A DNA stretch of 64,000 nucleotides, taken from sequence record KJ019103.1. One strand, written 5' to 3'. The position numbers were made by a program, and so were the translations under genes. The notes beneath the pieces are model-generated. The model did not search any database, was not told the DNA's origin, and was given only the letters and a program-made list of their open reading frames with translations. Shown one piece after another: positions 27,760 to 55,664 of this stretch (its first letter is position 1; every line of letters starts with the position of its first letter).

Positions 27760-27818
27760 TGTGACAGTCGACAAACTGGCACAGGGGGGTTGGCAAACCC
27801 CCTTTTTTGTGCTATAAT
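27760..27818 (+). promoter_or_regulatory. element copy 1 (with terminator hairpin)
   Basis: TGTGACAG..CTGGCACA, TTGGCA-17-TATAAT. Confidence 0.9.
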
Positions 27819-27851
27819 AACAGGGTAGTCAAACAGAGAGGTTAGGTTCTA

Positions 27852-28202
27852 GTGGGTTTCCTGAAGTCTCTGTTTGCTACTGCCTTGGTGGGTATTGTTG
27901 GTGTGGTGTCTCCCGCCGAGGCAAGTGTAGGTGGCAATATGTCTCCAGTCGTAGAGGGTATGTGTATAAAGTACACACCCTTTGGTGATTTGCCCTGTAA
28001 GATTAGAGTATACGATAGTGAAGAACTAGTGTATATTACAGATGGTCATAATACTATGACATATACCAAGCACCCATTCATACCATATGCGTGGACAATG
28101 TATGTGAATGAACAACGGATATCTAATATGTTATGCTCCCTAGATAAGTATAACTTCTCTTGTTTCACCTCAATCCAATTTGTTCCTGATTATGAAAACT
28201 AA
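27852..28202 (+). CDS. exported hypothetical protein
   Basis: signal peptide ending AEA; several Cys; GTG start. Confidence 0.65.
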   Translation: MGFLKSLFATALVGIVGVVSPAEASVGGNMSPVVEGMCIKYTPFGDLPCKIRVYDSEELVYITDGHNTMTYTKHPFIPYAWTMYVNEQRISNMLCSLDKYNFSCFTSIQFVPDYEN

Positions 28203-28524
28203 ATCATTGATGCTCACCAGTTTGATGGTGGCAACGATAACCGCAACACCTGCTATGGCATACGGATATCGTCAACCATACTATCAACAACCCCCAGTTG
28301 TTATTCAACAGCCAGCACCTGTTATCATTCAACAACCAAGACCCAGTACCCTAGAAACTGTTTTGGGTATTGCAGTTATTGGTGCAGGTTTATACTGGAA
28401 TAGTCCAGCATATCAGAACGATCATGGATATTATAATGGAAATAGAAACCATCATCACAACCAATACCAAGGTGGCAAAACATATGTAATTTGTAATGAT
28501 TACGGACGGAGGTATTACTGCTGA
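28192..28524 (+). CDS. exported/membrane hypothetical protein, Pro/Gln-rich
   Basis: signal peptide ending AMA; QQPPVVIQQPAPVIIQQP; TM segment. Confidence 0.65.
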   Translation: MKTKSLMLTSLMVATITATPAMAYGYRQPYYQQPPVVIQQPAPVIIQQPRPSTLETVLGIAVIGAGLYWNSPAYQNDHGYYNGNRNHHHNQYQGGKTYVICNDYGRRYYC

Positions 28525-28733
28525 TGGATTTTGTGGCATTTATGATTGATAAGGAAAACGCCTTATCACTGATACAATCACTTCACGAATCTGCCGATAA
28601 GTGTAGTAAAGATGGAAGACGAATTATGGAAGCAAACTATACCAAACTAGCAGACATGATGATGGAACAATACCTAGTATCAGAGAGTATCCACAGGAAG
28701 AGAAAAAGAAATAACGGAGATTATATCGGCTAA
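28524..28733 (+). CDS. hypothetical protein
   Basis: coupled ORF. Confidence 0.6.
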   Translation: MDFVAFMIDKENALSLIQSLHESADKCSKDGRRIMEANYTKLADMMMEQYLVSESIHRKRKRNNGDYIG

Positions 28734-29305
28734 TGATTGACTATCTTACCATCCCTAATAGCTTATCAGACAAACTTTGTGACGACATCATTCACAAGTT
28801 TGACAGTGATGATAGAGTTGATTATGGTAAAATTAATATGGGAGATGTTGATACTGAGGTCAAAAGATGTAAAGAGTTGTTCATATCAATCCTAGATAAC
28901 TGGCGAGATCTTGACAATCAGGTATTCAATGCGTCGGTGAAGGGGTTAAGTCAATACCGTGAGTACATTAATGAGTTATACGATGCCGATTATCTTCTAG
29001 GATCAGATAATTCTGATCAAGGTTACCGGGTAAAGAGATACGATATTGGTGAAGATTACTTTCATTGGCATCATGATCTACGCATAGATGAAAACCGTAG
29101 GATGAGATCAGTTGCCTTCATATGGTATCTAAATGATGTGGAAGAGGGTGGTGAAACAGAATTTAGTAATGGTCTAAAGATACGTCCAGAGAAAGGTAAA
29201 CTACTTCTATTTCCATCTACATGGAACAACGTACACAGAGGGAATACACCAATAAGTAATACGAAGTATGCTATTACTAGTTTCCTCTATTCCTCCTACG
29301 ATTAG
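28733..29305 (+). CDS. 2OG-Fe(II) oxygenase
   Basis: YFHWHHD, IWYLNDVEEGGETEF, FPSTWNNVHRGN. Confidence 0.9.
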   Translation: MIDYLTIPNSLSDKLCDDIIHKFDSDDRVDYGKINMGDVDTEVKRCKELFISILDNWRDLDNQVFNASVKGLSQYREYINELYDADYLLGSDNSDQGYRVKRYDIGEDYFHWHHDLRIDENRRMRSVAFIWYLNDVEEGGETEFSNGLKIRPEKGKLLLFPSTWNNVHRGNTPISNTKYAITSFLYSSYD

Positions 29306-29334
29306 GTGATATATACTAAGTATGGGATACTTCA

Positions 29335-29889
29335 GTGGCAAAGGGTTATCGAATCAGGGGAGACTTTATTGCAAGTCTCATTAAACAACACGACTGTAAG
29401 ATTGGTTATGAAATTGGGGTATCCAATGGTGCAACTTTTGGTAAGATCTTAAAGAAATGTGATAATATTGAGTGGCATGGTGTAGATCCATGGGTTGTAT
29501 GTCCCGAGTATGATAAACGCCCCAATGGTAAGGGTAAGTGGAATCATGATAGTAACTATGAGAAAGTTCAGGAGATTGTTAGTAAGTATCCAAAGCGTGC
29601 ATATACCCACCGCATGACCTCTGTAGAGGCTGCAAAGGAGGTAGAGGATAGAAGTATTGATATTATCTTTATAGACGGTCTGCACACCTACGAGGGGGTG
29701 AAGGAAGATCTAGAAGCTTGGGTGCCAAAGATCAAAATAGGTGGTATAATCTCTGGACATGACTATAAAGGTATGAAGAGACATGAGGGTGTGACTATAC
29801 GAGTGAATGAAGTATTTGGTGAAGAAAACATTACTACTGGTCCAGATGTGACCTGGTGGTTATACAAAACGGAGGAACACGATGACTGA
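29335..29889 (+). CDS. class I SAM methyltransferase (Methyltransf_24-like)
   Basis: YEIGVSNG, DIIFIDGLHTYEGV..D, GGIISGHDY. Confidence 0.85.
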   Translation: MAKGYRIRGDFIASLIKQHDCKIGYEIGVSNGATFGKILKKCDNIEWHGVDPWVVCPEYDKRPNGKGKWNHDSNYEKVQEIVSKYPKRAYTHRMTSVEAAKEVEDRSIDIIFIDGLHTYEGVKEDLEAWVPKIKIGGIISGHDYKGMKRHEGVTIRVNEVFGEENITTGPDVTWWLYKTEEHDD

Positions 29890-30643
29890 GGGTTATGTTG
29901 TTATTGCACTTGGCGATAAGTATGTTCAACTCGCCAAGAACTTTGAAGATACACTAAGACAAAACGGTGACAATCGTCCTGTTCATGTTGTCACTGAAGA
30001 CATGATTGATAAGGATAATGATAAGTATAGGGACTGTGATGTTCCCAACGAAAGGTATAACTGCTACCCCAAACTTCACTTCAATGAGTATGCGATATTT
30101 GATCATAGTATCCTAATCGATGCCGATGTTCTGTGCGTAGGTGATACCCAACACGTTTGGGATATGTGTAAAGAACAGGAACAGTTTATTCTTCACCGTG
30201 GGTGGGGACAAGTTACTAAATGGAATAGAGAACTACAGAAGAAAGTGTGGGACGTTCATGGGTTCGTACCTCCTCGCATTCACGGAGCTTTCTGTTATCT
30301 AAGGAAGGCAGATATCAATGAAGACTTCTTTGAATTTATCCAAAATAATGTGTGGTTTCAGTATACTGAATGGTGTACGGAAGATGTCAAAGCAAGACAT
30401 CACAGGTTAAGTAGATCAGACCAGGTGATATATGCTATTGGTTATGGTAAGTTTGATCTCATGCCCTGTCAGTTAATGGAAGTCCCTATTATGACTCATA
30501 TATTGACAGCGGCACACGTTAATCCTCCATACGATAGAATCACTTTTAAGGATCAAATTGGACCCGATTTACAACATCCAGTGGCATTTGCCCATATCGA
30601 ACAACTATTTCAGGAGAGCACCCCAGAAAGTTTTCTAAGGTGA
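29882..30643 (+). CDS. GT-A glycosyltransferase-like protein (GT8-like)
   Basis: SILIDADVL DxD motif; SRSDQ; C-terminal FAH. Confidence 0.6.
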   Translation: MTEGYVVIALGDKYVQLAKNFEDTLRQNGDNRPVHVVTEDMIDKDNDKYRDCDVPNERYNCYPKLHFNEYAIFDHSILIDADVLCVGDTQHVWDMCKEQEQFILHRGWGQVTKWNRELQKKVWDVHGFVPPRIHGAFCYLRKADINEDFFEFIQNNVWFQYTEWCTEDVKARHHRLSRSDQVIYAIGYGKFDLMPCQLMEVPIMTHILTAAHVNPPYDRITFKDQIGPDLQHPVAFAHIEQLFQESTPESFLR

Positions 30644-30697
30644 CAGTCCACAAACTGGCACACAGGGCTTGGCAACCCTCCCAAAAGGTGCTATACT
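30639..30697 (+). promoter_or_regulatory. element copy 2
   Basis: GGTGACAG..CTGGCACA, TTGGCA-17-TATACT. Confidence 0.9.
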
Positions 30698-30723
30698 ATC
30701 CAAGTAACCAAAGGAAATGATTT

Positions 30724-30945: not shown

Positions 30946-30949
30946 GCCT

Positions 30950-31556: not shown

Positions 31557-31754
31557 ATGACTACTGACCCAAACGATAAGTACGCTAAGTTCAAAGTACC
31601 ATTTGGCACTAATGAACATCACGAAGATGATGAATGGGATCCTACAACTGAGGGTAAAATCTCTGATTGGCACAACCGACATCAAGATAAACTCTTAGAT
31701 GAGTTTTGTGACACTCACCCAGGCGCACCCCAATGTAAGGTGTTTGACGATTAG
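31557..31754 (+). CDS. cp12: small protein with CP12-like C-terminus
   Basis: C-terminal LLDEFCDTHPGAPQCKVFDD matches the CP12 CxxxPxxxxCxxYDD motif; TAAATA at 31530; AGGAG RBS. Confidence 0.8.
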   Translation: MTTDPNDKYAKFKVPFGTNEHHEDDEWDPTTEGKISDWHNRHQDKLLDEFCDTHPGAPQCKVFDD

Positions 31755-31802
31755 CAAAGTGGCACAAGACCACTTGACAGTACCACATTATTAGGTTACA
31801 GT
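31743..31802 (+). promoter_or_regulatory. element copy 3 (degenerate left arm)
   Basis: GTGGCACA, TTGACA-17-TACAGT. Confidence 0.65.
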
Positions 31803-32212: not shown

Positions 32213-32500
32213 GTGGATTTCAGGGTAACAGTAAGAACACACACCGGGGCAGTTAGAGTTGTCGAGGTGAGCAACATGCCGAACGAGGAGGCAGCCAGAG
32301 CGGAAGCTGTTGGTATGACTTTCGGTAGGGTTCTGCAGGTTGAGTGTTTAGATGAGATCCCAGAACAATCCAAACCTAAAAAGAAAAGAGGACCAGTTCA
32401 AGAGATTGAACGAGAACTTAGACCAGGTGAAACCGAAACAATTGTAACAGGTTACAATAGCAACCCGTTAGCAGTGTTCTTCACTTTAGATGTTTTTTAG
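32213..32500 (+). CDS. hypothetical protein
   Basis: GTG start after GAGG; TAAATA at 32182. Confidence 0.6.
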   Translation: MDFRVTVRTHTGAVRVVEVSNMPNEEAARAEAVGMTFGRVLQVECLDEIPEQSKPKKKRGPVQEIERELRPGETETIVTGYNSNPLAVFFTLDVF

Positions 32501-32532
32501 GGGTTGACACACCCCTTTTTTTGTGCTATACT
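32500..32532 (+). promoter_or_regulatory. element copy 4 (no dyad; terminator hairpin plus promoter)
   Basis: GGGG-TTGACACA-CCCC-T7, TTGACA-17-TATACT. Confidence 0.8.
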
Positions 32533-32851: not shown

Positions 32852-33067
32852 ATGAACCTAACTGAACATCAAAAGATTCAACTCTCACAATTTATTCATG
32901 AGTCGTTCTCTACATTCTATGAGGAGGAACTAAAGTTTCAAGTAGAAACTCTAAAAGATGATGACAAGTTGGATTGGACTTATACAATCACACCAAGAGA
33001 CTCAGGGGAGATTTATGATAAGGTTCAGGAATTATTCACACTAGAAAGGCGTGTGACAGTCGAATAA
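32852..33067 (+). CDS. hypothetical protein
   Basis: C-terminus RVTVE encoded by element copy 5. Confidence 0.65.
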   Translation: MNLTEHQKIQLSQFIHESFSTFYEEELKFQVETLKDDDKLDWTYTITPRDSGEIYDKVQELFTLERRVTVE

Positions 33068-33111
33068 GTGGCACAAGGGGGGTTGGCGAACCCCCTTTTT
33101 GCTGCCATAAT
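33052..33111 (+). promoter_or_regulatory. element copy 5 (with terminator)
   Basis: full dyad, TTGGCG-17-CATAAT. Confidence 0.9.
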
Positions 33112-33133: not shown

Positions 33134-33262
33134 ATGAACGTCCCCAACTGGCAGAAACACTCTAAGAAAGACCAGAAGGGTCGCGGGGTGAGCAAGGGTC
33201 AGATGAGAGCCCGCAAACAGGCTCTACGTGCCCTGAAGGCAAAGCTCCTTGTGACAGTCTAG
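33134..33262 (+). CDS. small basic protein
   Basis: MNVPNWQKHSKK..; ends LLVTV in copy 6. Confidence 0.7.
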   Translation: MNVPNWQKHSKKDQKGRGVSKGQMRARKQALRALKAKLLVTV

Positions 33263-33309
33263 GAAGTGGCACAAGCCCCCTAGGCAAGACCCTCAAACCC
33301 TGCTATACT
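33250..33309 (+). promoter_or_regulatory. element copy 6
   Basis: full dyad, TAGGCA-17-TATACT. Confidence 0.92.
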
Positions 33310-36432: not shown

Positions 36433-36837
36433 ATGAATAAGAACAAGCACAATGAGATTGTAGGATCTACAGTAGAAAGATCAGACGAGAGGATCAAAGA
36501 CACTGGGGAGGTATTCACTCCCCTAGAACTGTGTCGTGAGATGGTTAGTGAGATCCCCCTATCTACCCTGCAAGATCCTAACTCCACCTTTTTGGATAAT
36601 TCTGCTGGCTGTGGCAACTTCCTCATCGCCCTCAGGGACCGGCTATTGGAATATCATGAGTTATCACATATCGTAGACAATATGATCTACTGTGTGGAAC
36701 TTATGGAGGACAACCATAGGGAAATATGTAAGACAATGGGTGTATCTACCGATCATCCACACTATGTGAGGGCAAATGCACTGGAATACGATTATAGCTT
36801 CGGCAACCCCGTTGGGTTGGAGAGTTTCTTCGTGTGA
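36433..36837 (+). CDS. short N6-adenine DNA methyltransferase-like protein
   Basis: TGEVFTP and FLDNSAGCGNFL (motif I); no NPPY/DPPY motif IV. Confidence 0.7.
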   Translation: MNKNKHNEIVGSTVERSDERIKDTGEVFTPLELCREMVSEIPLSTLQDPNSTFLDNSAGCGNFLIALRDRLLEYHELSHIVDNMIYCVELMEDNHREICKTMGVSTDHPHYVRANALEYDYSFGNPVGLESFFV

Positions 36838-36892
36838 CAGTTGAATAAGTGACACAAGGGGGGTAGGCACCCCCCTTTTTTTGTGCCATAAT
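36833..36892 (+). promoter_or_regulatory. element copy 7 (with terminator)
   Basis: TGTGACAG..GTGACACA, TAGGCA-17-CATAAT. Confidence 0.9.
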
Positions 36893-37454: not shown

Positions 37455-37514
37455 TGTTACACCTAAACAACTGGCACAAGGGGGGTAGGCACCCCCCTTT
37501 TTTTGTGCCATAAT
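37455..37514 (+). promoter_or_regulatory. element copy 8 (with terminator)
   Basis: TGTTACAC..CTGGCACA, TAGGCA-17-CATAAT. Confidence 0.9.
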
Positions 37515-38447: not shown

Positions 38448-38657
38448 ATGGATTATCAACCCCCAACTCTCTGTATTCGGAGTATTGAACCCGCTGCAAC
38501 TCCCGGTAGGTTCTTGTTAGATATGCCTTCACTTTGGAGAGAACCAGGAGCATTAGAGGTGGATCAATATACCATCGATTATGTTACTGGTGGGAAATAT
38601 GAGGTTCCTAAATGTCCCCCAGGTTATCCAAATCCACCAACCCCTGATACACAATGA
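38448..38657 (+). CDS. hypothetical protein
   Basis: coupled ORF. Confidence 0.65.
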   Translation: MDYQPPTLCIRSIEPAATPGRFLLDMPSLWREPGALEVDQYTIDYVTGGKYEVPKCPPGYPNPPTPDTQ

Positions 38658-38788
38658 CACCCGAAGAATTTGAAGAAAATGCAAGAATCATCACGGGCGA
38701 CCCAACATGGTCACTAGATGATGATGTGACACCTGAGGAAGTGGCACAACCCCCCTTGGCAAACCCCCTGAAACCTGTTATCTTATAG
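38654..38788 (+). CDS. small ORF reading through element copy 10
   Basis: MTPEEFEENARIITGDPTWSLDDDVTPEEVAQPPLANPLKPVIL; ATGA-coupled. Confidence 0.45.
   Translation: MTPEEFEENARIITGDPTWSLDDDVTPEEVAQPPLANPLKPVIL
38725..38784 (+). promoter_or_regulatory. element copy 10
   Basis: TGTGACAC..GTGGCACA, TTGGCA-17-TATCTT. Confidence 0.88.
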
Positions 38789-38844
38789 GAGTGGGAGAGA
38801 TACACCCCCCACACCAAACAAACCCCCTACAACCCCTTCTAAGT

Positions 38845-39195
38845 ATGAATCTCAAGGCACTGGCACTCACTTCCGTTCTCGCCGTTGGTGGCATCTTTGG
38901 ATCAGTTGCACCAGCATCAGCTGGCACCTGTTGGTTTGAAAACTACAGTGGTAGTTTGTCTCCAACATATTGTTCCACATATGTTAGGACTAACGCTAAC
39001 GGACACAGGGTTGTGGATGTTGTTGACTATGAAGGAACCACAATGACGTTAGTATTTTGGACTGATAGTTCAGTTGAGATTCTTTACACTAACGGACAAT
39101 ACAATGGCCAAAGAGTTGTGGCAACTTGGTACTTCGATGATGATGGTGACCGTCGCATCTACGTTGGTGACTTTGAAATGAGTCTCCGAGTTTGA
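38845..39195 (+). CDS. exported hypothetical protein
   Basis: signal peptide MNLKALAL...ASA; two Cys. Confidence 0.75.
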   Translation: MNLKALALTSVLAVGGIFGSVAPASAGTCWFENYSGSLSPTYCSTYVRTNANGHRVVDVVDYEGTTMTLVFWTDSSVEILYTNGQYNGQRVVATWYFDDDGDRRIYVGDFEMSLRV

Positions 39196-39891: not shown

Positions 39892-39951
39892 TGTGCCAGT
39901 TGGACTAGTGGCACAACCCCCCTAGGCAAACCCACAGCAGTCGTGTATTGT
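39892..39951 (+). promoter_or_regulatory. element copy 11
   Basis: TGTGCCAG..GTGGCACA, TAGGCA-17-TATTGT. Confidence 0.88.
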
Positions 39952-39997
39952 ATAGAAGTGGAGGGGAAACCCACCACACAAACCACTAACTAACCAA

Positions 39998-40209: not shown

Positions 40210-40455
40210 ATGAACACAACAACAATCAACATTCTCAAATCACTGGACATTCTTTCCACTTTGATTCAGGCATTCTATGAGATTGGATATGAACTTGGCA
40301 CCTTCTATCGCAACCATCTTCATTCACATGTGAAGTTTGCTATTGAATACTCTGGTCTTGTTATTCGTGAGACCTATGGTAACCGTCAAGAGTATTTCAC
40401 AAAACTGAATAACTTCCGCAACCAAGCTGGTTCATACTTTGTCTATAGCGTGTGA
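40210..40455 (+). CDS. hypothetical protein
   Basis: stop codon is the TGA of copy 12. Confidence 0.7.
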   Translation: MNTTTINILKSLDILSTLIQAFYEIGYELGTFYRNHLHSHVKFAIEYSGLVIRETYGNRQEYFTKLNNFRNQAGSYFVYSV

Positions 40456-40510
40456 CAGTTGAGGAAGTGGCACAACCCCCCTTGGCAAACCCCTCAGGGG
40501 GTGCTATACT
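40451..40510 (+). promoter_or_regulatory. element copy 12
   Basis: full dyad, TTGGCA-17-TATACT. Confidence 0.92.
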
Positions 40511-40535
40511 ATATTCATACCAAAGGGAACCACCC

Positions 40536-40778: not shown

Positions 40779-40826
40779 CAAACTGGCACAAGGGGGGTTG
40801 GCAAGACCCCCCAAAACCCCTATACT
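40767..40826 (+). promoter_or_regulatory. element copy 13 (left arm lost)
   Basis: CTGGCACA, TTGGCA-17-TATACT. Confidence 0.85.
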
Positions 40827-42415: not shown

Positions 42416-42961
42416 ATGGCTATTTTCTCCGAAGAGTTCACCAACAGCATCAAGTCTAAAGTTGATTCAGCAAAGAACAAAATCTCTAACATCAACATTG
42501 GGAAACAGAGTGTCGTTGCTATTGTGGGAGGTACTTTAGTATTCTCAACCCTCGCAGTTGGTGCAGTTGGTGCTACAGTTCGTCAGGTTGTTGGTTCTAA
42601 CATTGGCAAAGAATGTAATGTGGCTGTTGGTGACTATGTGAGGTTGGCTGAAGTTCAAGAGACACAACTACTCAAGGCTAATGGATATATTCAATCGGTT
42701 CTAGAAAACCCTTGGAGCGCCCTAGTCCTTGGTGCTAGGATGTCTGAGATGGCAGACGAGATGAGTGCTCGTTGGGATGAGATTGGTGAAGCTGATGACA
42801 CTTACCTTGAATCATGTGTTCTTGATGGTGACTTCAAGCGTTGGGTATTTGGTGGATATGTTCAAGAGGATCGTGAAGTGAAGTGGGAAGCTCAAGCTAA
42901 CCTAGAGGAAACTCGTCAGGTTACAGTTAAACTCTCTGAGCAACTAGATAGCCGGTACTGA
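42416..42961 (+). CDS. membrane-anchored helical protein
   Basis: TM segment at residues ~32-52. Confidence 0.75.
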   Translation: MAIFSEEFTNSIKSKVDSAKNKISNINIGKQSVVAIVGGTLVFSTLAVGAVGATVRQVVGSNIGKECNVAVGDYVRLAEVQETQLLKANGYIQSVLENPWSALVLGARMSEMADEMSARWDEIGEADDTYLESCVLDGDFKRWVFGGYVQEDREVKWEAQANLEETRQVTVKLSEQLDSRY

Positions 42962-43021
42962 TGTGACAGTTGAATAAGTGGCACAAGGGGGGTTCGCAAC
43001 CCTCCTTTTTTATGCTATACT
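42962..43021 (+). promoter_or_regulatory. element copy 16 (with terminator)
   Basis: full dyad, TTCGCA-17-TATACT. Confidence 0.92.
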
Positions 43022-43045
43022 ATATTCATACCAAAGGAACCACAC

Positions 43046-43297
43046 ATGCCCAACCCTTTCGAGTCACTGACCTCTGAGGAGTTTTCGTTTCTATCTGACG
43101 CATGTGCCCTCTCTGAGCAAATGTGGAGGGAGCGCTCCCGTTCTATAAAAGCAGGGGAGCCACGTTGGTTTCTAGATGGTGAGCCCATGTTCACTGAAGA
43201 GGAATGTCGCTCAGAAATGAAACGATACCGTGAGTTACAGAAGCGAGTTTCCTGGTTCTCCCTCACACCAGAAGAGATGGAGCGTGTGACAGTCTAG
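43046..43297 (+). CDS. hypothetical protein
   Basis: ends ERVTV in copy 17. Confidence 0.7.
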   Translation: MPNPFESLTSEEFSFLSDACALSEQMWRERSRSIKAGEPRWFLDGEPMFTEEECRSEMKRYRELQKRVSWFSLTPEEMERVTV

Positions 43298-43344
43298 AAA
43301 CTGGCACAAGCCCCCTAGGCAAACCCCTCCTTTTCTGCTATACT
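43285..43344 (+). promoter_or_regulatory. element copy 17
   Basis: full dyad, TAGGCA-17-TATACT. Confidence 0.92.
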
Positions 43345-44272: not shown

Positions 44273-44466
44273 TGATTGACTTCGATACTCTAACCCACGA
44301 AGAACTAGAGAGACTATCTGATGACTGTGAAGACTTTCTTCTTCATAGAAATATACCTCTAAGGTCACATTCCTATGAGAATATCATCAGACATGCTATT
44401 TTGGAAGGATACCAACTATCTCGGTATCCTGGTGTGACACCTGGGAAACTGGCACAAGACCCCTAG
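44272..44466 (+). CDS. hypothetical protein
   Basis: reads through the dyad and stops at the TAG of the -35. Confidence 0.7.
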   Translation: MIDFDTLTHEELERLSDDCEDFLLHRNIPLRSHSYENIIRHAILEGYQLSRYPGVTPGKLAQDP

Positions 44467-44492
44467 ACAAACCAGACCACACCTGCTATACT
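44433..44492 (+). promoter_or_regulatory. element copy 18
   Basis: TGTGACAC..CTGGCACA, TAGACA-17-TATACT. Confidence 0.92.
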
Positions 44493-46438: not shown

Positions 46439-46648
46439 ATGTCTTCACCATCAGCATTCACACCAGCATTAGGTCTAGAAGTTGAATACAGGGGCTTTGT
46501 GGGTTATATCAAGTTTATAGATGAAGAATATTTAACAGTGTGTGTGAAGAAGAAAGAGCACCAAATGTTTGGTGATGTTTGTATGGTTGTGTATCCAAGT
46601 CAGTGGGAACACATTAAACTAATGGGCGGACCTCACAGAGACCGCTAG
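46439..46648 (+). CDS. hypothetical protein
   Basis: stop lies in the left arm of copy 19. Confidence 0.7.
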   Translation: MSSPSAFTPALGLEVEYRGFVGYIKFIDEEYLTVCVKKKEHQMFGDVCMVVYPSQWEHIKLMGGPHRDR

Positions 46649-46705
46649 GACAGTTGGGGAAGTGTCACAAGGGGGCTAGGCAAGCCCCCTTTGTCGTGCT
46701 ATACT
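46646..46705 (+). promoter_or_regulatory. element copy 19 (with hairpin)
   Basis: TAGGACAG..GTGTCACA, TAGGCA-17-TATACT. Confidence 0.88.
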
Positions 46706-46732: not shown

Positions 46733-46879
46733 ATGACTATCAACCTTAAAAGTCTATTCATCACCACTTGTGTGGGTCTCACCCTAATACTAGGGAGCTT
46801 CGCTTTTACCAGTGATTATGGTACTGAGACCGGGCGTGGCGAACAGACTGAGAGCCCTTACTACGGACCCGCTTTCTAA
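46733..46879 (+). CDS. small membrane/exported protein
   Basis: start corrected to MTINLKSL; hydrophobic N-terminus. Confidence 0.6.
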   Translation: MTINLKSLFITTCVGLTLILGSFAFTSDYGTETGRGEQTESPYYGPAF

Positions 46880-46924
46880 AGTGGCACAAGGGGGGTTGGC
46901 AATACCCTCTACACCTGCTATACT
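46865..46924 (+). promoter_or_regulatory. element copy 20 (left arm lost)
   Basis: GTGGCACA, TTGGCA-17-TATACT. Confidence 0.85.
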
Positions 46925-46947: not shown

Positions 46948-47124
46948 ATGTTCAAACTTCAACTCAAGTGGCAGAAAGAAGGTGAGTGGATTGATACAGT
47001 ATACGCTCCTACAGAATACGCAACAGCTTTCTTTCGTTGGAGACAGTACCAAGAGCTTTGGGGTGATACTCACACCTATCGCCTCCTCGATGTGACACCT
47101 CAGGAAGTGGCACAAGCCTCCTAG
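46948..47124 (+). CDS. small hypothetical protein (missing from ORF track)
   Basis: MFKLQLKWQKEGEW...DVTPQEVAQAS; reads through copy 21. Confidence 0.65.
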   Translation: MFKLQLKWQKEGEWIDTVYAPTEYATAFFRWRQYQELWGDTHTYRLLDVTPQEVAQAS

Positions 47125-47150
47125 GCAAACCACCCCACACCTGCTATACT
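47091..47150 (+). promoter_or_regulatory. element copy 21
   Basis: TGTGACAC..GTGGCACA, TAGGCA-17-TATACT. Confidence 0.92.
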
Positions 47151-47488: not shown

Positions 47489-47647
47489 ATGTTTGTATCC
47501 TTCACTGAAATCCAAGACTATATTCGCGAAGATCAATACACATATAGTGAGCGCCAGTTCCGCTCACGCAAGTATAAAAAGAACGAACGTCGTTATCAGC
47601 GTCGTCAGAAGCAACAACAAAGAGAACGCAACTACGATAGCGTGTGA
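47489..47647 (+). CDS. small Arg/Gln-rich protein (missing from ORF track)
   Basis: MFVSFTEIQDYIRED...; stop is the TGA of copy 22. Confidence 0.6.
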   Translation: MFVSFTEIQDYIREDQYTYSERQFRSRKYKKNERRYQRRQKQQQRERNYDSV

Positions 47648-47701
47648 CAGTTGGAGAAGTGGCACACACTTCTCCGCAAACCCCTCAGGGGGTGCTATAC
47701 T
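47643..47701 (+). promoter_or_regulatory. element copy 22 (CCGCA class)
   Basis: full dyad, TCCGCA-17-TATACT. Confidence 0.92.
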
Positions 47702-47726: not shown

Positions 47727-47951
47727 ATGACCACCACCACTCCAAACCTCTACAACGAAGCTATCCGTCGTTTGGCTGACGGGTTCTCCTCAGAGTTCGC
47801 TGAGTTCTGTGCAGGAGACGAGAGGGTTCACGAGATCATGATGGACCTCGCTAGTGAGTTCGTAGAAACCAATATCCCTGTAGTGAGTGAGGATAGCCAG
47901 CACGACGTGGCTTCTGAGCTCCTCATGAGTATCACAGTCACCAAGGTGTGA
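47727..47951 (+). CDS. hypothetical protein
   Basis: start corrected to MTTTTPN; stop in copy 23. Confidence 0.7.
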   Translation: MTTTTPNLYNEAIRRLADGFSSEFAEFCAGDERVHEIMMDLASEFVETNIPVVSEDSQHDVASELLMSITVTKV

Positions 47952-48006
47952 CAGTCTAGGAACTGGCACAAGGGGGGTTGGCAACACCCCCCAAAACCTC
48001 TATACT
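47947..48006 (+). promoter_or_regulatory. element copy 23
   Basis: full dyad, TTGGCA-17-TATACT. Confidence 0.92.
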
Positions 48007-49498: not shown

Positions 49499-49557
49499 TG
49501 TGACAGTTGGATTAGTGGCACACGAAAGCCCGCAAACCCCTCAGGGGGTGCTATACT
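49499..49557 (+). promoter_or_regulatory. element copy 24 (CCGCA class)
   Basis: full dyad, CCCGCA-17-TATACT. Confidence 0.9.
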
Positions 49558-49579: not shown

Positions 49580-49936
49580 ATGATCTACTCTATCACTCAC
49601 CAGGAGACTGGCATTACGTATTCAGTTAGCACTGAAGATATTCGTAAAGTTGCTAACATCCTCCCAATGAACTCTGAGGAGTTGGCTGACATGATGACAG
49701 GTCTGAATTGTGACTCATATGCAGATATGGCAGAAGAGTATATTGAAGAAGTTGCGGATATGTATGATGATGTGACACTGGCAACTGATAAGTTTATGAG
49801 TAGCACTGATGAAAGAGCACAAACAACGTTCGCCTACTATCGTATCATGAACTGTGATAACTCTGATGAAGTGACTACACAATATTGGCGTGATGACGCT
49901 ATGGCTATGATCACTGACTACAATGATCGCAAATGA
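49580..49936 (+). CDS. acidic hypothetical protein
   Basis: after copy 24. Confidence 0.7.
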   Translation: MIYSITHQETGITYSVSTEDIRKVANILPMNSEELADMMTGLNCDSYADMAEEYIEEVADMYDDVTLATDKFMSSTDERAQTTFAYYRIMNCDNSDEVTTQYWRDDAMAMITDYNDRK

Positions 49937-50244
49937 AACGCTACGGACTTTATTGGCTGAGAGCTATAACCCTAGGGGCTGGTCTAAACTTTGTTTTGAC
50001 TGGTTATCTCATGGGTCACCAAAAGTGGAAGTTTCAACATGCAGCTCCACTCTCAGCGTTTATCTGTGTGAATCTATCGTATGTGGCGGATCGTCTTATC
50101 TTTGGTGATAAGAAGGAACCTGAAGATTTAGATCCAGATACTATTGTTATATCAACCCCACACTGTTGCCCCGTATGTTCAGAGTATCCTTGCACTTGTG
50201 ACAGTTGGGAAAGTGGCACAACCCCCCTAGGCAACACCCTCTGA
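49933..50244 (+). CDS. membrane protein with Cys cluster
   Basis: two TM segments; HCCPVCSEYPCTC; runs into copy 25. Confidence 0.6.
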   Translation: MKRYGLYWLRAITLGAGLNFVLTGYLMGHQKWKFQHAAPLSAFICVNLSYVADRLIFGDKKEPEDLDPDTIVISTPHCCPVCSEYPCTCDSWESGTTPLGNTL

Positions 50245-50256
50245 ACCTGCTATACT
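50197..50256 (+). promoter_or_regulatory. element copy 25
   Basis: full dyad, TAGGCA-17-TATACT. Confidence 0.92.
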
Positions 50257-50280: not shown

Positions 50281-50478
50281 ATGAAAGTCTCTCAGGAAGT
50301 TTTCAAGAGTTACATTCAGATACTGGATGAAAACACACAAACATCATGGGATATCCTAAATGTTTTGAATGATATTGTTAGAGGTGACTGGGATAACTCA
50401 GTCCAGTATTGTTTGGAAAATCCATCAGGCGACCCTATGGATGATTTCAACTACGCAGGCAGTCGCCACCACTATTGA
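50281..50478 (+). CDS. hypothetical protein
   Basis: after copy 25. Confidence 0.7.
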   Translation: MKVSQEVFKSYIQILDENTQTSWDILNVLNDIVRGDWDNSVQYCLENPSGDPMDDFNYAGSRHHY

Positions 50479-50507
50479 TCACTAACTCACCACACTAACT
50501 AACAACT

Positions 50508-50792
50508 ATGACACGCACTCCAATGACAGTCACCCTCAAGCGTAGCGACTGGGAATGTTATACAGACACCCCCGATACTATCATCGAAACTATCAACTCA
50601 TACTTCTCTTATGTGTTATCAACTAAAGATAACGCGTTTGATGCACAGTCTGAGATATTCAAGTTTCTGAATATGTTTAGTGAGTTTGGGTTTATGGATA
50701 GTGAGTGCCTAGAATGTGCAACTAGAGTCATCAACAGATATTTCGATTCATACCTCTCCCGCTGGAGTCAGGTGGGTGATGTGACAGTCTAG
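50508..50792 (+). CDS. hypothetical protein
   Basis: ends GDVTV in copy 26. Confidence 0.7.
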   Translation: MTRTPMTVTLKRSDWECYTDTPDTIIETINSYFSYVLSTKDNAFDAQSEIFKFLNMFSEFGFMDSECLECATRVINRYFDSYLSRWSQVGDVTV

Positions 50793-50838
50793 GAACTGGC
50801 ACACGCTTCTCCGCAAACCCCTCAGGGGGTGCTATACT
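50780..50838 (+). promoter_or_regulatory. element copy 26 (CCGCA class)
   Basis: full dyad, TCCGCA-17-TATACT. Confidence 0.92.
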
Positions 50839-50860: not shown

Positions 50861-51178
50861 ATGAATTTCAGAACACTAGCACTCACCACCACCCTGGCTC
50901 TCTCCACTGTCCTAGGTGGTTTGGCTCCTGAAGCTAAGTCAGCTGACTTTTGTGACAACATCCCCGGCAACTCGGGATACGTTTGTGTTACCATGGGTCT
51001 CTGGTTCGACTTGGTTGAGGCAGACATACCCGCCTTTGGTGGTAAAGAGTCATTACACATCACCTGTGACAATGGCTGGTCATATCGATCTAATGGTAAC
51101 TGGAACAAAGACGCCGCTTCCCTTGTGGCTAAGGAATACTGTGAAGGTGCTGGCTGGAACAGCCACTCCGAGGTGTGA
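50861..51178 (+). CDS. exported four-Cys protein (paralog of 47174)
   Basis: signal peptide; four Cys; stop in copy 27. Confidence 0.75.
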   Translation: MNFRTLALTTTLALSTVLGGLAPEAKSADFCDNIPGNSGYVCVTMGLWFDLVEADIPAFGGKESLHITCDNGWSYRSNGNWNKDAASLVAKEYCEGAGWNSHSEV

Positions 51179-51233
51179 CAGTCTAGGAAGTGGCACAAGC
51201 CCCCTAGGCAAGACCCCTCGGGTCTGCTATACT
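51174..51233 (+). promoter_or_regulatory. element copy 27
   Basis: full dyad, TAGGCA-17-TATACT. Confidence 0.92.
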
Positions 51234-51258: not shown

Positions 51259-51525
51259 ATGTTCCCACACCTCCACATCTCTGAATCAAACCTCGGACCT
51301 CACACCTCCACGTTTTTCAAAGTATCATCACAACCACAAGATGAGTGGCAGAATGGCATTTTCCATAACTCACCTTATGGTATCTTTCACCTTCATTCTG
51401 AGAAAGGTGTTTATAAGTTGGAACTATCTTCCTCAGGTTTGAATACACCTAAGTTCAGGAAGTGTAAGTGTGAAGATGAACTTACCGCACTCACTAAGAT
51501 TCGTCAGTGGATGGATAAGTTCTGA
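51259..51525 (+). CDS. hypothetical protein
   Basis: after copy 27, AGGA RBS. Confidence 0.75.
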   Translation: MFPHLHISESNLGPHTSTFFKVSSQPQDEWQNGIFHNSPYGIFHLHSEKGVYKLELSSSGLNTPKFRKCKCEDELTALTKIRQWMDKF

Positions 51526-51560
51526 TATTATCTAACACAAACCACTCACAACAAACTATC

Positions 51561-51734
51561 ATGAACCGACTAGAACTACTGACCCAACGTGAACAACTGA
51601 TGGAGAGGATTGACTCTATCTGTGATGAATTCTTTTATAAGAACTATAATGGAGATACATCAGAAGCAGATGAATTAGTTCGTATTCTATGTGATGCTGT
51701 TTGTGAAACCATAGACCCAGCGGGCATGGTGTGA
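51561..51734 (+). CDS. small hypothetical protein (missing from ORF track)
   Basis: MNRLELLTQREQLMERIDSIC...LVRILCDAVC; stop in copy 28. Confidence 0.7.
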   Translation: MNRLELLTQREQLMERIDSICDEFFYKNYNGDTSEADELVRILCDAVCETIDPAGMV

Positions 51735-51789
51735 CAGTTGAGGAAGTGGCACAAGCCCCCTAGGCAAACCCCTCCATACCTGCTATACT
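51730..51789 (+). promoter_or_regulatory. element copy 28
   Basis: full dyad, TAGGCA-17-TATACT. Confidence 0.92.
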
Positions 51790-52078: not shown

Positions 52079-52138
52079 TGTGACAGTTGGAGAAGTGGCA
52101 CAAGCCCCCTAGGCAAACCCCTCCATACCTGATATACC
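52079..52138 (+). promoter_or_regulatory. element copy 29 (damaged -10)
   Basis: full dyad, TAGGCA-17-TATACC, apparent 11-bp deletion. Confidence 0.85.
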
Positions 52139-53832: not shown

Positions 53833-53833
53833 T

Positions 53834-53962
53834 ATGAATTATCAAAACCAAGCTCTTGTGATACTTCTAGGTCTAATGGTTATAGCTGGTATTAACGTAA
53901 TTCACTATGAACAACAATGGCAATGTAGGATGCATCAAACCTATTGTTTTGTTTCTGAATAA
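53834..53962 (+). CDS. small membrane protein (missing from ORF track)
   Basis: MNYQNQALVILLGLMVIAGINVIHYE... Confidence 0.45.
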   Translation: MNYQNQALVILLGLMVIAGINVIHYEQQWQCRMHQTYCFVSE

Positions 53963-54651
53963 TACCATAGGTAACCCTTCCAACGCGAACCCCATTTGAT
54001 AGAAGTACAAATACCCTTTCCACGATCCTCTTCATTAAAGGATCTCATCGCATCACTAATAGAGTCAAAGACGGGAGTAACATGACCAGTCTTATGAACT
54101 CCATAGACTTGTTTCTTATTCTTAGCGTGTTTATGAATCCACCATTTGTAACCATATGCCGAACCCTCTCTTGTGATACTTCTCCTGATATTTGATGGCC
54201 TACCATTCACAAACTCAGCGGCAGCAACCCAACCGTGAAAGGTTTTGATCTTACCCGTTTCCAAGCACCTACACTTGATCACGTTCTTATCATGTTTCTT
54301 AGGTTTCTTCTTTCGTTGATAACCCCAACGCCTATCCCCATTATGATATGACTCTTTATTATTCAGCTTCCTACCAGTATGTTCTAACACCAAATTGTTA
54401 TATTCAGGTTGATACTTATTCATCCAATATTCCACTCTCTCTTTAACCTTATTATCATTCACTTCTTCTAGTATGCGTATAGTGAAGTCATCGGAGTTAT
54501 AGTAACCCAACGCATTCGACAGAGGAGTATTTTCCTCCTTATGATTTTCCAATATCCCAGCCCAAACTTTATTCAGGGGAAGCGTATCATAACCGATGTA
54601 TTTGTGAGAGGTTTGTCTATTCAAGATGATGTAGATGTTTGTGATGCTCAC
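53941..54651 (-). mobile_element. free-standing GIY-YIG homing endonuclease gene
   Basis: N-terminal NIY...KYIG and conserved E (ILEE); C-terminal repeated NUMOD1/HTH-like units; only confidently called minus-strand gene in the accessory region. Confidence 0.75.
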
Positions 54652-54751: not shown

Positions 54752-54865
54752 ATGAAGATGAATAACCAATGGAATTACCTAAGAGAAGGTAACACTAATC
54801 CCCTATACAATAACCCAATAGAAAGTGATCTAATAGAAGGTAATCATATAGAGGAAGGTGAATAG
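54752..54865 (+). CDS. possible short ORF
   Basis: TGTTATAAT upstream, AAGGAAGAG RBS; repetitive, may be non-coding. Confidence 0.3.
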   Translation: MKMNNQWNYLREGNTNPLYNNPIESDLIEGNHIEEGE

Positions 54866-55000
54866 AAAGCCCTATACAATACCCCTTATAATAGTATCAT
54901 ATAACGAGGTCTTTACAGCTCACTAAGCTCCTCCTAAACTCCACTGCCCGTTGCATATAAAGATCCATAGAAAGGTCTCTGCCCGTTGCTACCTTAGCCC

Positions 55001-55029
55001 ACCCTACCACGGGATTCCATTTTTGCCAA
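55001..55029 (-). promoter_or_regulatory. minus-strand sigma70-like promoter facing the GIY-YIG gene
   Basis: reverse complement reads TTGGCA-17-TAGGGT with extended TG. Confidence 0.5.
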
Positions 55030-55064
55030 GGGATCTCCGAAAATCTTAATATTTCCGAGACACC

Positions 55065-55124
55065 CCAGACACCCACGGAACTGGCACAAACCCCCTAGAC
55101 AAACCCCCCGAAATGGCATATACT
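55065..55124 (+). promoter_or_regulatory. element copy 31
   Basis: CCAGACAC..CTGGCACA, TAGACA-17-TATACT. Confidence 0.88.
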
Positions 55125-55150
55125 ATATTCATACACAAGGGAACCGACCC

Positions 55151-55384
55151 ATGGAATTCATCCAAACTGACTACCCCGCTAACATGGCTCCCAATGTTAT
55201 GGAGAGGAACTATGGTCGGGGTATCATCCTGACTCAGGTCAATGAGGATGGTGTCATTCCATTCTCAGTATTCAATTTCAAAAAAGAGGATTGGAACTGG
55301 GGAGCTGACTACTACATGACCGAGCATAACTTTTATACACTAGAAGAGGCAGAGGCGGTAGTGACTCAGCTCGTAGCCAGCTGA
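55151..55384 (+). CDS. hypothetical protein
   Basis: after copy 31. Confidence 0.7.
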   Translation: MEFIQTDYPANMAPNVMERNYGRGIILTQVNEDGVIPFSVFNFKKEDWNWGADYYMTEHNFYTLEEAEAVVTQLVAS

Positions 55385-55432
55385 ACCACTGTCACATGGG
55401 GGCTAGGCACAGCCCCCTCTATACCCTATACT
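55373..55432 (+). promoter_or_regulatory. element copy 32
   Basis: GTAGCCAG..CTGTCACA, TAGGCA-17-TATACT. Confidence 0.88.
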
Positions 55433-55458
55433 ATATTCATACACAAGGGAACACCCCC

Positions 55459-55617
55459 ATGACCAAAGCAACTCAGAGACCTTCCACCCAGAGCCGTTAC
55501 ACCAGTCAGGTAGCCATGGATCGTAAGGCAGCAGCACTCCAGAGGGCAGAGGAGCGTCGCCTCACGGGTTCTGCCGACGTGGATCAGGTGAACCGCCTCT
55601 ACACTGTGACACTCTGA
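55459..55617 (+). CDS. small hypothetical protein
   Basis: start corrected to MTKATQR; ends YTVTL in copy 33. Confidence 0.65.
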   Translation: MTKATQRPSTQSRYTSQVAMDRKAAALQRAEERRLTGSADVDQVNRLYTVTL

Positions 55618-55664
55618 GAACCGGCACACAGGGGGTTGACAATACACCCCCATGGCTCTATACT
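55605..55664 (+). promoter_or_regulatory. element copy 33
   Basis: TGTGACAC..CCGGCACA, TTGACA-17-TATACT. Confidence 0.9.

Follow-up and report, generated by a model that had tools for sequence, protein, structure and literature searches.

The window analysed here, a stretch of 64,000 nucleotides from sequence record KJ019103.1, belongs to Synechococcus phage ACG-2014f, a T4-like cyanomyovirus. Between positions 27760 and 55664, about 80 small accessory genes are partitioned by 33 co-oriented copies of one module of 60-90 bp on the + strand, the number given in an earlier note on this DNA. A full 24-bp dyad is present in 27 copies, the promoter-proximal half only in five (31743, 40767, 46865, 55065 and 55373), and no dyad in a single copy at 32496. 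The exact pattern TGTGMCAS-N8-STGKCACA is matched 21 times in the window, always on the + strand, against 0.00 expected, and TGNTATACT 23 times against 3.9 expected; the 27 full dyads are obtained once a few mismatches are allowed. A promoter matrix derived from the elements of these 27 dyads recovered 32 sites when both strands of the window were scanned, all of them on the + strand. Neighbouring elements are 198 bp to 3.6 kb apart. Across the genome, dyads of this class are restricted to this small-ORF region (27.7-55.7 kb), one site before cobS and one before psbA; the replication and metabolism genes have dyad-free TGTTATAAT promoters. The elements are as follows.

27760-27818, +, element 1, full dyad, terminator-like G6/C5 hairpin with T6 (-15.0 kcal/mol), TTGGCA in loop, -10 TATAAT
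30639-30697, +, dyad with 1 mismatch (GGTGACAG), weak hairpin
31743-31802, +, proximal half-dyad only (AAGTGGCACA), TTGACA-17-TACAGT; from promoter matrix
32496-32532, +, no dyad, GGGG/CCCC hairpin with T7, TTGACA in loop, TGCTATACT; from promoter matrix
33052-33111, +, full dyad, terminator-like hairpin with T5 (-15.9), -10 CATAAT
33250-33309, +, full dyad, C-run variant, hairpin-free
36833-36892, +, dyad, terminator-like hairpin with T7; left junction of an inter-isolate cassette replacement
37455-37514, +, degenerate distal arm, terminator-like hairpin with T7; deletion junction in KJ019155, KJ019091 and KJ019101
37904-37963, +, degenerate distal arm, hairpin without T-run; right junction of a 3.4-kb methyltransferase and helicase replacement
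38725-38784, +, full dyad, Syn9-type -10 (TATCTT), long AGTGGGAG leader
39892-39951, +, dyad TGTGCCAG..GTGGCACA, Syn9-type -10 (TATTGT); leader repeat flanks a 197-bp ORF indel
40451-40510, +, full dyad, CCCCTCAGGGGG hairpin in promoter spacer
40767-40826, +, proximal half-dyad only, G6/C6 hairpin; from promoter matrix
41110-41168, +, full dyad, CGCTTC/CCCGCA variant; left repeat of a single-gene cassette indel
41367-41426, +, full dyad; right repeat of the single-gene indel named for 41110-41168, 84-bp overlap, hybrid element in KJ019155
42962-43021, +, full dyad, terminator-like hairpin with T6; wholly missing in 3 isolates, where the flanking genes overlap at ATGA
43285-43344, +, full dyad, C-run variant
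44433-44492, +, full dyad, -35-like hexamer TAGACA
46646-46705, +, dyad with 3 mismatches, strong hairpin (-16.6), T-poor tail
46865-46924, +, proximal half-dyad only; from promoter matrix
47091-47150, +, full dyad
47643-47701, +, full dyad; CACTTCTCC pairs with dyad spacer GGAGAAGTG
47947-48006, +, full dyad, G6/C6 hairpin without T-run
49499-49557, +, full dyad; missing with its following gene in 3 isolates
50197-50256, +, full dyad
50780-50838, +, full dyad; left boundary of KJ019101 gene swap
51174-51233, +, full dyad; right boundary of KJ019101 gene swap, crossover between -35 and -10
51730-51789, +, full dyad, nearest of all to consensus
52079-52138, +, full dyad, -10 TATACC; extra gene and element inserted here in KJ019101
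52497-52556, +, full dyad, terminator-like hairpin, 5' of helicase gene
55065-55124, +, proximal half-dyad only; from promoter matrix
55373-55432, +, proximal half-dyad only (CTGTCACA), hairpin; from promoter matrix
55605-55664, +, last element, dyad with 3 mismatches, TTGACA-17-TATACT

The operator is a 24-bp near-palindrome, TGTGMCASTY-N4-RASTGKCACA, located at approximately -66 to -43, and the stop codon of the preceding gene mostly lies inside or adjoins it, a feature absent from the earlier note. From dyad start to -10 start there are 53 nt in 6 copies and 54 nt in 21; the 59-60 bp from dyad start to -10 end described earlier was found in all 27 full-dyad copies. TATACT serves as the -10 hexamer in 25 of 32 copies, TG is present at -15/-14 in 26 of 32, and a -35-like hexamer (TAGGCA in 15, TTGGCA in 7, CCCGCA or TCCGCA in 4, and others) invariably lies 17 bp upstream of TGn-TATACT, in agreement with the spacer and extended -10 of the earlier note. 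Most copies were classed as sigma-70-like with a TG extension in an independent consensus scan. In 29 of 31 copies the first ATG follows the -10 by 16-29 nt, and an AAGGAAC-type purine box, as claimed for the leader (AAGG(G)AAC), is present in 23 of 32.

A feature missed by the earlier note is a G/C hairpin that overlaps the -35 in 12 of the 27 copies and holds the hexamer within its loop. A T-run follows it in 5-7 of the 27; these copies look like intrinsic terminators and may act as such, and the consensus scan scored 4 element hairpins as terminator-like. Termination is no general property of the array, since so few copies have such a tail; from most copies the hairpin has been lost, typically with a C-run in place of the 5' G-run. 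The 'weak -35' of the earlier note is not simply weak: in some copies the hexamer forms the loop of a terminator-like hairpin.

The dyad is not peculiar to ACG-2014f. Syn9 carries it at 48558 and 52996, with degenerate copies at 46339 and 51050, all in the syntenic small-ORF region (~4-6 copies versus 35 in ACG-2014f). A scan of IMG/VR found the dyad in at least 120 environmental cyanophage loci. Among the matches listed, 84 dyad loci encode homologues of array proteins; of the 161 non-redundant sites, 107 have a TAnnnT box at offset 53-55, and 53 of them have TTG at offset 31. Positions left free by the search pattern are still conserved, T9 being present at 84% of these listed sites and A16 at 85%. 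Doron et al. 2016 (ISME J) reportedly described a 'novel regulatory element' of early genes in Syn9 and other T4-like cyanophages. The Syn9 dyad is of the ACG-2014f type, at an equal distance from a -10-like box and in a small-ORF region, and may be the published motif; the dyad is also abundant in environmental cyanophage contigs, and ACG-2014f, like the Syn9 system, has a second, host-like, dyad-free promoter class before replication genes. To our knowledge, a recombination role and cellular counterparts are absent from that report.

In cellular genomes the pattern occurs at 120 loci or more, against ~9 expected by chance; among the matches listed, 91 are from Acidobacteriota, 15 from Cyanobacteriota and none from marine picocyanobacteria. 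The Acidobacteriota chromosomal sites (~90 among the matches listed) have a -10 box peak at offset 54, the box being present in 65, and no -35. In Nostocales and Microcystaceae the dyad-promoter module is located 5' of the Cyano-1 (Yfr2) sRNA, and the RNA 5' end, 64 nt past the dyad start, agrees with the predicted start site. Because it lies upstream of this 5' end, the cyanobacterial dyad is not transcribed from the Cyano-1 promoter. Phage and bacterial chromosomes share this palindrome-promoter design, and for that reason the binder is probably a host factor.

The whole is best explained, with reasonable probability, as a gene-junction module that combines a stop region, an operator, sometimes a terminator, an extended -10 promoter, an RBS leader and a recombination site. 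The element would close the upstream gene, with stop codons in or near the dyad, and a dimeric DNA-binding protein, most likely a host factor, would sit on the operator and assist the host RNA polymerase. In a subset of copies, a transcript arriving from upstream may fold into the G/C hairpin and T-run, with the -35-like hexamer in its loop, so that read-through is terminated or attenuated. Transcription would start ~7 nt downstream of the extended -10 (TGn-TATACT), and the short leader would present a purine-rich ribosome-binding box 5-9 nt 5' of the ATG. Homologous recombination by the phage between copies may then delete, insert or swap cassettes and leave expression of the neighbours intact. 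By analogy with Syn9, the dyad promoters are probably early. The sequence gives indirect support to an activator role of the dyad, as the earlier note proposed: the dyad-to--10 spacing is rigid in ACG-2014f and recurs in the environmental and Acidobacteriota sites, the latter without a -35; the module is found at the Cyano-1/Yfr2 sRNA; and the arms contain non-complementary positions that speak against a hairpin. The binder itself we infer, and the occurrence of the dyad in cellular genomes speaks for a cellular dimeric activator rather than for a repressor or a hairpin.

Known activator systems offer partial parallels. NtcA-type cyanobacterial promoters lack a -35 and have GTA-N8-TAC at -41.5, and CRP class I and II sites are TGTGA-N6-TCACA. 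As in these designs, the phage dyad would hold a dimer at a constant distance from a TAnnnT box and take the place of the -35, and its outer TGTGA/TCACA letters resemble CRP half-sites; its half-sites, however, are 14 nt apart rather than 6-8, with the centre near -54.5 and not at -41.5 or -61.5. PMM1637, a PlmA-type GntR protein, is the one host activator of marine picocyanobacteria known to act from a similarly placed upstream palindrome; pull-down and gel shift demonstrated its binding to CGRE1 at the Yfr2 sRNA promoters of Prochlorococcus and marine Synechococcus (PMC6191309, PMC6778093). CGRE1 (GTTG-N13-CAAC, central GTGACAC, start at -55 to -57; PMC6191309, PMC6778093) occurs in the phage's host group; like the phage dyad, it is a palindrome 21-24 nt long that lies immediately 5' of the -35 position, and other cyanobacteria have the phage-type dyad before the same sRNA family. 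The phage dyad differs in sequence (TGTGMCASTY-N4-RASTGKCACA) and starts near -66. CGRE1-like sites are absent from ACG-2014f and the compared cyanophages; PlmA is reportedly confined to cyanobacteria (PMC6191309, PMC6778093), whereas the dyad is commonest in Acidobacteriota among the matches listed.

It is unlikely, though not negligibly so, that the dyad is a repressor operator, bound for example by a phage early protein that silences early genes at the middle switch. Early genes of T4-like cyanophages are turned off after the first phase, as established for Syn9, and an operator common to all early promoters would permit coordinated shut-off; a small MazE/AbrB-like protein is encoded in the window (56547-56711), with homologues in 14 dyad-bearing IMG/VR loci among the matches listed. 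The position of the dyad (-66 to -43), 5' of the core promoter and clear of the -35 and -10, argues against this, as does a distance to the -10 that varies by no more than 1 nt in ACG-2014f, environmental phages and Acidobacteriota promoters lacking a -35, since contact with polymerase on one face of the helix needs such spacing and simple occlusion does not. Syn9, in addition, has the dyad but no AbrB-like homologue.

Less probable still is reading of these promoters by a phage sigma-70 family protein, which would make them middle rather than early, with TAGGCA as its -35. ACG-2014f does encode a protein of 230 aa that contains sigma regions 2 and 4 (record positions 139540-140232), and the -35-like hexamers deviate from TTGACA. 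Against it, the -35 is largely dispensable for primary sigma factors where an extended -10 (TGn) is present, the dyad-promoter module is also found in cellular genomes, and Syn9 has dyad promoters with only a gp55-type late sigma in its annotation.

The elements double as break-and-join points for gene swapping, and the earlier note's claim of recombination junctions is supported by cassette gain, loss and replacement among six ACG-2014f isolates: of the 28 indel or replacement junctions, 18 are no more than 10 bp from an element, against 12% expected (P = 1.7e-10). Junctions away from elements were found at 36426 and 49933 and as a 226-bp insertion near 50476-50504. Hybrid elements are present with overlaps of 59-84 bp at junctions, crossover points vary inside the element (leader, -10, between -35 and -10, dyad), and the elements are mosaics, with the four-gamete test passed in 9 of 10 segment pairs. 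Homologous crossover between copies would be expected because the 33 repeats have the same orientation and long identical stretches. A dedicated site-specific recombination or mobile-element system (integron attC- or MITE-like) is very unlikely: as in integron arrays, co-oriented, promoterless-looking small ORFs lie between imperfect inverted repeats and come and go as units, an element-only indel (42945-43051) separates two otherwise overlapping genes, and homing-endonuclease genes are close by, but each cassette here has its own promoter, no integrase or transposase is among the Pfam families listed (25 of 26) for the 84 array proteins, terminal inverted repeats and target duplications are both absent at the element-only indel, the dyad-to--10 relation is fixed in cellular promoters, and the variable crossovers and hybrids fit homologous exchange.

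Hardly credible is a dyad that works as RNA or single-stranded DNA, whether as an upstream-transcript 3' hairpin (stabiliser, processing site or terminator part) or as a cruciform. In its favour, the dyad is a near-palindrome situated where the upstream gene ends, with a terminator-like hairpin behind it in some copies. Against it, 23 of 27 copies have A facing G at positions 5/20, and 20 of 27 have G/G or C/C at positions 8/17, as do 177 of the 234 environmental sites in promoter orientation (among the matches listed); folding gives a mean of -4.9 kcal/mol, compared with -15.8 for a perfect palindrome, five copies retain the promoter-proximal arm alone, the cyanobacterial dyad is 5' of the Cyano-1 RNA, and an Rfam search of the window gave no matches.

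The gene-junction module has its closest known relatives in the promoter-early stem-loops (PeSLs) of the T4-like phages RB49/phi1, T4/PST and KVP40/nt-1 (PMC2839356, PMC4122927); the sole cyanophage paper to mention PeSLs saw no dense array of them in S-PM2 (PMC4503421). Both PeSLs and the ACG-2014f elements are repeated, co-oriented promoter/terminator modules set between small ORFs in hyperplastic regions; they share G-run/C-run stems and a conserved Shine-Dalgarno leader, and both occur at indel or replacement junctions of close relatives with crossovers at differing points within the module, so that the array follows the swapping logic of the coliphage and vibriophage cassettes. The ACG-2014f elements differ in having a 24-bp GC-containing palindrome in place of the AT-rich upstream region, an extended -10 promoter, and a stem-loop that is gone from most copies and overlaps the -35 rather than lying upstream of it. 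The placing of the -35 in a hairpin loop in 12 of 27 copies, 5-7 of them terminator-like, makes the array a cyanophage counterpart of PeSL cassettes.

The window covers bases 1-64000 of Synechococcus phage ACG-2014f (KJ019103.1, isolate Syn7803US44), which is a T4-like cyanomyovirus (Kyanoviridae, Atlauavirus) with a genome of 217,937 bp. The array region holds about 80 small ORFs on the + strand, mostly unannotated, and extends from the tail-fibre genes to the gp25/gp6 baseplate genes, the place of the hyperplastic region in T4-like phages. The exact dyad TGTGMCAS-N8-STGKCACA has 21 matches, on the + strand every time, against none in 100 shuffles, and TGNTATACT occurs 23 times (3.9 expected). 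When mismatches are tolerated the number of full dyads rises to 27. A promoter-part matrix gives 32 sites, every one of them on the + strand; its additional sites carry the proximal arm AASTGGCACA alone (five copies) or, in one case, no dyad. The earlier note had counted 33 elements with a fixed distance between dyad and -10, and both statements hold: the total is made up of the 27 full dyads, the half-dyad copies and the dyad-less one, and in each of the 27 full copies 53 or 54 nt separate the start of the dyad from the -10 hexamer. The -35-like hexamer and the -10 hexamer are separated by 17 bp. The -10 hexamer reads TATACT in 25 of 32 copies, TG is present at -15/-14 in 26 of 32, and an ATG lies 16-29 nt beyond the -10 in 29 of 31. 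In a fuzzy dyad scan, chance near-matches on the - strand fall in the long collagen-like Gly-X-Y coding repeats of a 929-aa ORF (14042-16831).

The stop codon of the upstream gene, which had been overlooked, lies mostly within or adjoining the dyad, as TGA right before it, as the TGA in TGTGA, or as TAG or TAA in the dyad spacer. Stop codon, operator, optional terminator, promoter, and leader are thus united in one element, which is a complete gene junction. Three GenBank coding sequences pass through elements (40452-40778, 38654-38788, 49933-50244), one with a GTG start in the dyad and two with ends past the -35; for CDS 40452-40778 the ATG near 40539, after the leader, is the likelier start. 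Elements 38725 and 39892 (named by start coordinate) have a long leader, ATAGRAGTGGRAGGGGARACCC..CACACAAACCA, at 38779-38845 and 39946-39997. It is common to phage Syn9 (GTGTATTCTATAGGAGTGGAAGGG) and several IMG/VR loci (compare also L129:15823-16021). This leader may fold as a structured RNA or serve as another kind of recombination linker.

Also overlooked was a strong hairpin (-11 kcal/mol or stronger) between dyad and -10, present in 12 of 27 copies and missing from 15. It overlaps the -35 and does not lie ahead of the promoter. Five to seven of the 12 have the shape of an intrinsic terminator (G5-6, loop, C5-6, then T5-7), with the "-35" hexamer in the loop; these are 27760, 33052, 36833, 37455, and 42962, and more weakly 46646 and 52497. 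The remaining copies either have a C-run instead of the 5' G-run, which leaves them without the hairpin, or form a small CCCCTCAGGGGG hairpin within the spacer. G-runs are seen in the 5' arm of 27760, 33052, and 42962, and C-runs in 33250, 38725, 40451, 41367, and others; the 3' C-run is retained in both. By this swap the terminator is lost and the G+C content beside the -35 is unchanged. It could have arisen by strand-switch repair or by selection.

The 33 elements of the array fall within 28 kb, all on the + strand and between small non-core ORFs. The structural block at 64-114 kb contains no element. Outside the array a full element is found only at two places of the record:
Record 114252-114330 (L003:252), dyad-promoter before cobS.
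Record 171717-171790 (L004:7717), dyad-promoter before psbA.

The psbA element is directly followed by CATAAATAAG, which is similar to a T4-type late promoter, so psbA may be served by an early and a late promoter in tandem. Another class of promoter, (G)TG-TGTTATAAT, is without dyad and mostly without -35. It is distributed over record 100-213 kb (for example 107419, 115930, 131939, 148502) and precedes genes of replication, nucleotide metabolism, and auxiliary metabolism. A transcriptome study of Syn9 reportedly found a novel element on early genes and host-like promoters on middle genes, and by analogy the division between the dyad class and the TGTTATAAT class in ACG-2014f would match that split. 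Besides the gp55 late sigma, a 230-aa sigma-70 family protein (regions 2 and 4) is encoded at record 139540-140232 (L003:25540-26232); the Syn9 annotation has no counterpart of it.

The array was compared in six isolates (the window's own, KJ019066, KJ019155, KJ019059, KJ019091, and KJ019101), and about twelve distinct gains, losses, or replacements were distinguished. The segment 36905-37918 is exchanged for a 3.4-kb cassette with a methyltransferase and a helicase, both junctions being within elements. Loss of the single gene 41190-41357 has left a hybrid element, with an 84-bp overlap. Gene 50861-51178 is exchanged for an unrelated gene between two elements, the right crossover lying between -35 and -10. 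An additional gene plus element is inserted inside element 52079, and element 42962 is absent by itself where the flanking genes overlap at ATGA. In three isolates the long leader of element 39892 is present twice and encloses a 197-bp ORF insertion; in KJ019059 an HNH endonuclease gene is inserted at window 51516-51561. Altogether 18 of 28 junctions lie no more than 10 bp from an element; the expected share is 12% (P = 1.7e-10; per event P = 2e-4). Within the window the elements are mosaic: variants of dyad spacer, flank, -35, spacer, and leader are found in nearly all combinations, and four gametes are present in 9 of 10 segment pairs. The proposal in the earlier note that the elements act as recombination junctions is supported by the position of these junctions, the hybrid elements, and the mosaic structure. 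An integron attC array would have a tyrosine-recombinase integrase beside it and one fixed crossover point; the array does not fit this, as no integrase is present among the 25 listed of the 26 Pfam families in the 84 array proteins, and the crossover points vary. The sole minus-strand gene of the region (53941-54651) is a NUMOD1-containing homing-endonuclease-like ORF annotated 'cox1-i7', the length of which varies by isolate (compare L131:27724-28119, another locus).

Promoter-early stem-loop (PeSL) cassettes are known from RB49/phi1, T4/PST, and KVP40/nt-1 (PMC2839356, PMC4122927). Like PeSLs, the elements are clustered and co-oriented between small non-core ORFs of the hyperplastic region, indel and replacement junctions of close relatives fall in them, and hybrids are seen. 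They also have the sigma-70-type promoter of a PeSL (17-bp spacing, TATACT -10, TG extension). They differ in carrying a conserved 24-bp dyad where the PeSL has an AT-rich region upstream of the -35. As to the terminating stem-loop that a PeSL has just upstream of its promoter, 12 of 27 copies have a strong hairpin, 5-7 of these with a T-run, and it overlaps the -35. The one cyanophage paper discussing PeSLs reported no dense PeSL array in S-PM2 (PMC4503421). The junction data carry PeSL-type shuffling from coliphages and vibriophages to cyanophages, for which previously only absence, in S-PM2, was noted.

In the syntenic small-ORF region of Syn9, a member of another genus, dyads stand at 48558 and 52996, and two further copies, at 46339 and 51050, are degenerate. 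All four lie 50 nt ahead of a GTGTATTCTATA box, and window elements 38725 and 39892 have a -10 and leader of the Syn9 type. BLAST with one element gave matches confined to the ACG-2014f lineage and S-CAM7; the wider spread is visible only by pattern search. A pattern scan of IMG/VR returned at least 120 loci with the dyad, and 84 of those listed encode homologues of array proteins. Among the matches listed, TAnnnT stands at offset 53-55 from the dyad start in 107 of 161 non-redundant sites (peak 53-54), and TTG peaks at offset 31. Positions left free by the search pattern are conserved in these sites as well (T9 in 84%, A16 in 85%), so the operator can be written TGTGMCASTY-N4-RASTGKCACA.

A genome collection of 596 Gb was scanned with the stricter pattern TGTGMCASTTNNNNAASTGKCACA, for which about 9 matches are expected by chance (4^-16 x 2^-4). 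At least 120 loci were found; among the matches listed, 91 belong to Acidobacteriota, 15 to Cyanobacteriota, and a few to others, with no marine picocyanobacterium among them. In about 90 listed sites of Acidobacteriota, TAnnnT occurs at offset 53-55 on one side in 65, with a peak at offset 54 (45 sites). No recognisable -35 is present in these, a start codon follows shortly downstream, and the genes behind them vary widely, many encoding secreted or envelope proteins. These sites appear to form a class of activator-dependent promoters that has not been described. Among the genome loci listed (L134-L253; for example L135:5014-5037, L141:4557-4580, L189:2227-2250), the palindrome TGTGACASTT-N4-AASTGTCACA is strongly enriched in chromosomes of Acidobacteriota. 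In Nostocales and Microcystaceae the dyad-promoter precedes a short conserved transcript, Cyano-1 (RF01701) according to Rfam, a family also known as Yfr2. The loci with dyad and Cyano-1 are:
L149:7006-7145.
L195:3995-4134.
L204:3111-3255.
L212:4104-4398.

The first base of Cyano-1 lies 64 nt past the dyad start, in agreement with a start site about 7 nt beyond the -10. The architecture before Cyano-1 is thereby that of a working promoter type in cells. Some Cyano-1 loci have two tandem sRNA copies, with a half-dyad at the second.

The rigid spacing between dyad and -10 in phages and cells favours an activator over a repressor. On the favoured reading, host polymerase would read the extended -10 promoter of each element with the assistance of a dimeric protein on the dyad; the terminator in a subset of copies would insulate the cassette, and the repeated modules would serve as substrates for homologous recombination. 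We infer early timing, terminator activity, and the identity of the binder. A tentative reading, one that we would sooner bet against than on, is that a conserved cellular activator, not recognised as such, has the dyad as its operator, that this factor also drives, in cyanobacteria, the Yfr2/Cyano-1 stress sRNA and, in Acidobacteriota, a sizeable -35-less regulon, and that T4-like cyanophages captured this host module to fire their first genes and then multiplied it into arrays doubling as recombination linkers. Under such a capture the start of infection would be tied to the light and nitrogen state of the host. An autoregulated binder was sought as a gene family shared by the flanks of cellular dyads, and none was found (largest cluster 10 of 192 flanking ORFs, Pfam families diverse).

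One candidate for the conserved activator is a PlmA-related protein of the GntR type. Marine picocyanobacteria induce Yfr2 through the PlmA-type GntR regulator PMM1637, which acts on CGRE1 (PMC6191309, PMC6778093), a palindrome of 21-22 nt starting at -55 to -57, with GTTG-N13-CAAC and a central GTGACAC (PMC6191309). The dyad is not CGRE1, which as described differs from it, and a pattern search for CGRE1-like sites (GTTG/GTTA-N13-14-CAAC/TAAC, central GTG(A)CAC) found none in ACG-2014f, Syn9, or the listed IMG/VR loci (at least 120). This makes PMM1637 a lead in the search for the binder; it does not identify it.

A phage-encoded binder is disfavoured relative to a cellular one by the presence of the dyad in cells and by Syn9, which has neither the sigma-70-like nor the AbrB-like gene of ACG-2014f. 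The AbrB-like gene (56547-56711) encodes a 54-aa protein with a sub-threshold match to MazE/AbrB (SpoVT-AbrB; 22.5 bits, cut-off 24.7), the sole DNA-binding-like match among the 84 array proteins. Its homologues occur within 15 kb of dyads in at least 14 IMG/VR loci, and none is found in Syn9. ACG-2014f lacks homologues of two Syn9 proteins, gp230 ('transcriptional regulator') and gp22.

The dyad itself is not a hairpin signal. Its arms oppose A to G at positions 5/20 in 23 of 27 copies, and G to G or C to C at positions 8/17 in 20 of 27 copies, a mismatch shared by 177 of 234 promoter-oriented environmental sites; its mean fold energy is -4.9 kcal/mol versus -15.8 for a perfect palindrome; and five copies persist with the proximal arm alone. 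An RNA family is likewise rejected, Rfam being without match in the window. In a CRP/FNR site (TGTGA-N6-TCACA, 16-22 bp, centre -41.5/-61.5) the spacing is different from that of the dyad, where the half-sites are 14 nt apart and the centre is near -54.5. For a sigma-54 promoter (GG-N10-GC; TGGCAC-N5-TTGC), GGCA or TTGC stands 13 nt past the GG of TGGCACA, an excess of 3-4 nt, and to our knowledge cyanobacteria lack sigma-54. By direct reading of the sequence, the spacing is wrong for sigma-54, CRP, NtcA, TnrA, and lux-box sites.

The cassette principle is already known from PeSLs, and the reported early-gene element of T4-like cyanophages is probably the same as the dyad element. In the open literature we found no account of the Syn9 early motif and no mention of the dyad, and the paper describing the ACG-2014f genomes does not mention the element. 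Relative to the open literature, the anatomy (dyad for AT-rich tract, hairpin wrapped round the -35), the array size and junction evidence in a cyanophage, and the identical operator-promoter design in Acidobacteriota and before cyanobacterial Yfr2 appear to be new. The elements bear on how the most abundant marine myoviruses turn on and reshuffle accessory genes. Should the dyad be bound by a host factor, the phage would rely on a host regulator for its early transcription, which would be a new control point, possibly a resistance point, in cyanophage-cyanobacterium interactions. From the cellular dyads a promoter class emerges in Acidobacteriota and cyanobacteria, and a simple DNA bait can now be used to look for its regulator.

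In three IMG/VR loci (L054:89-285, L060:779-1837, L118:12-330), dyad plus TTGACA is repeated in tandem at intervals of ~58-115 nt; the copies have no ORF between them and lack a good -10. Such a run may be a sponge or decoy for the factor that binds the dyad, or a region with multiple promoters.
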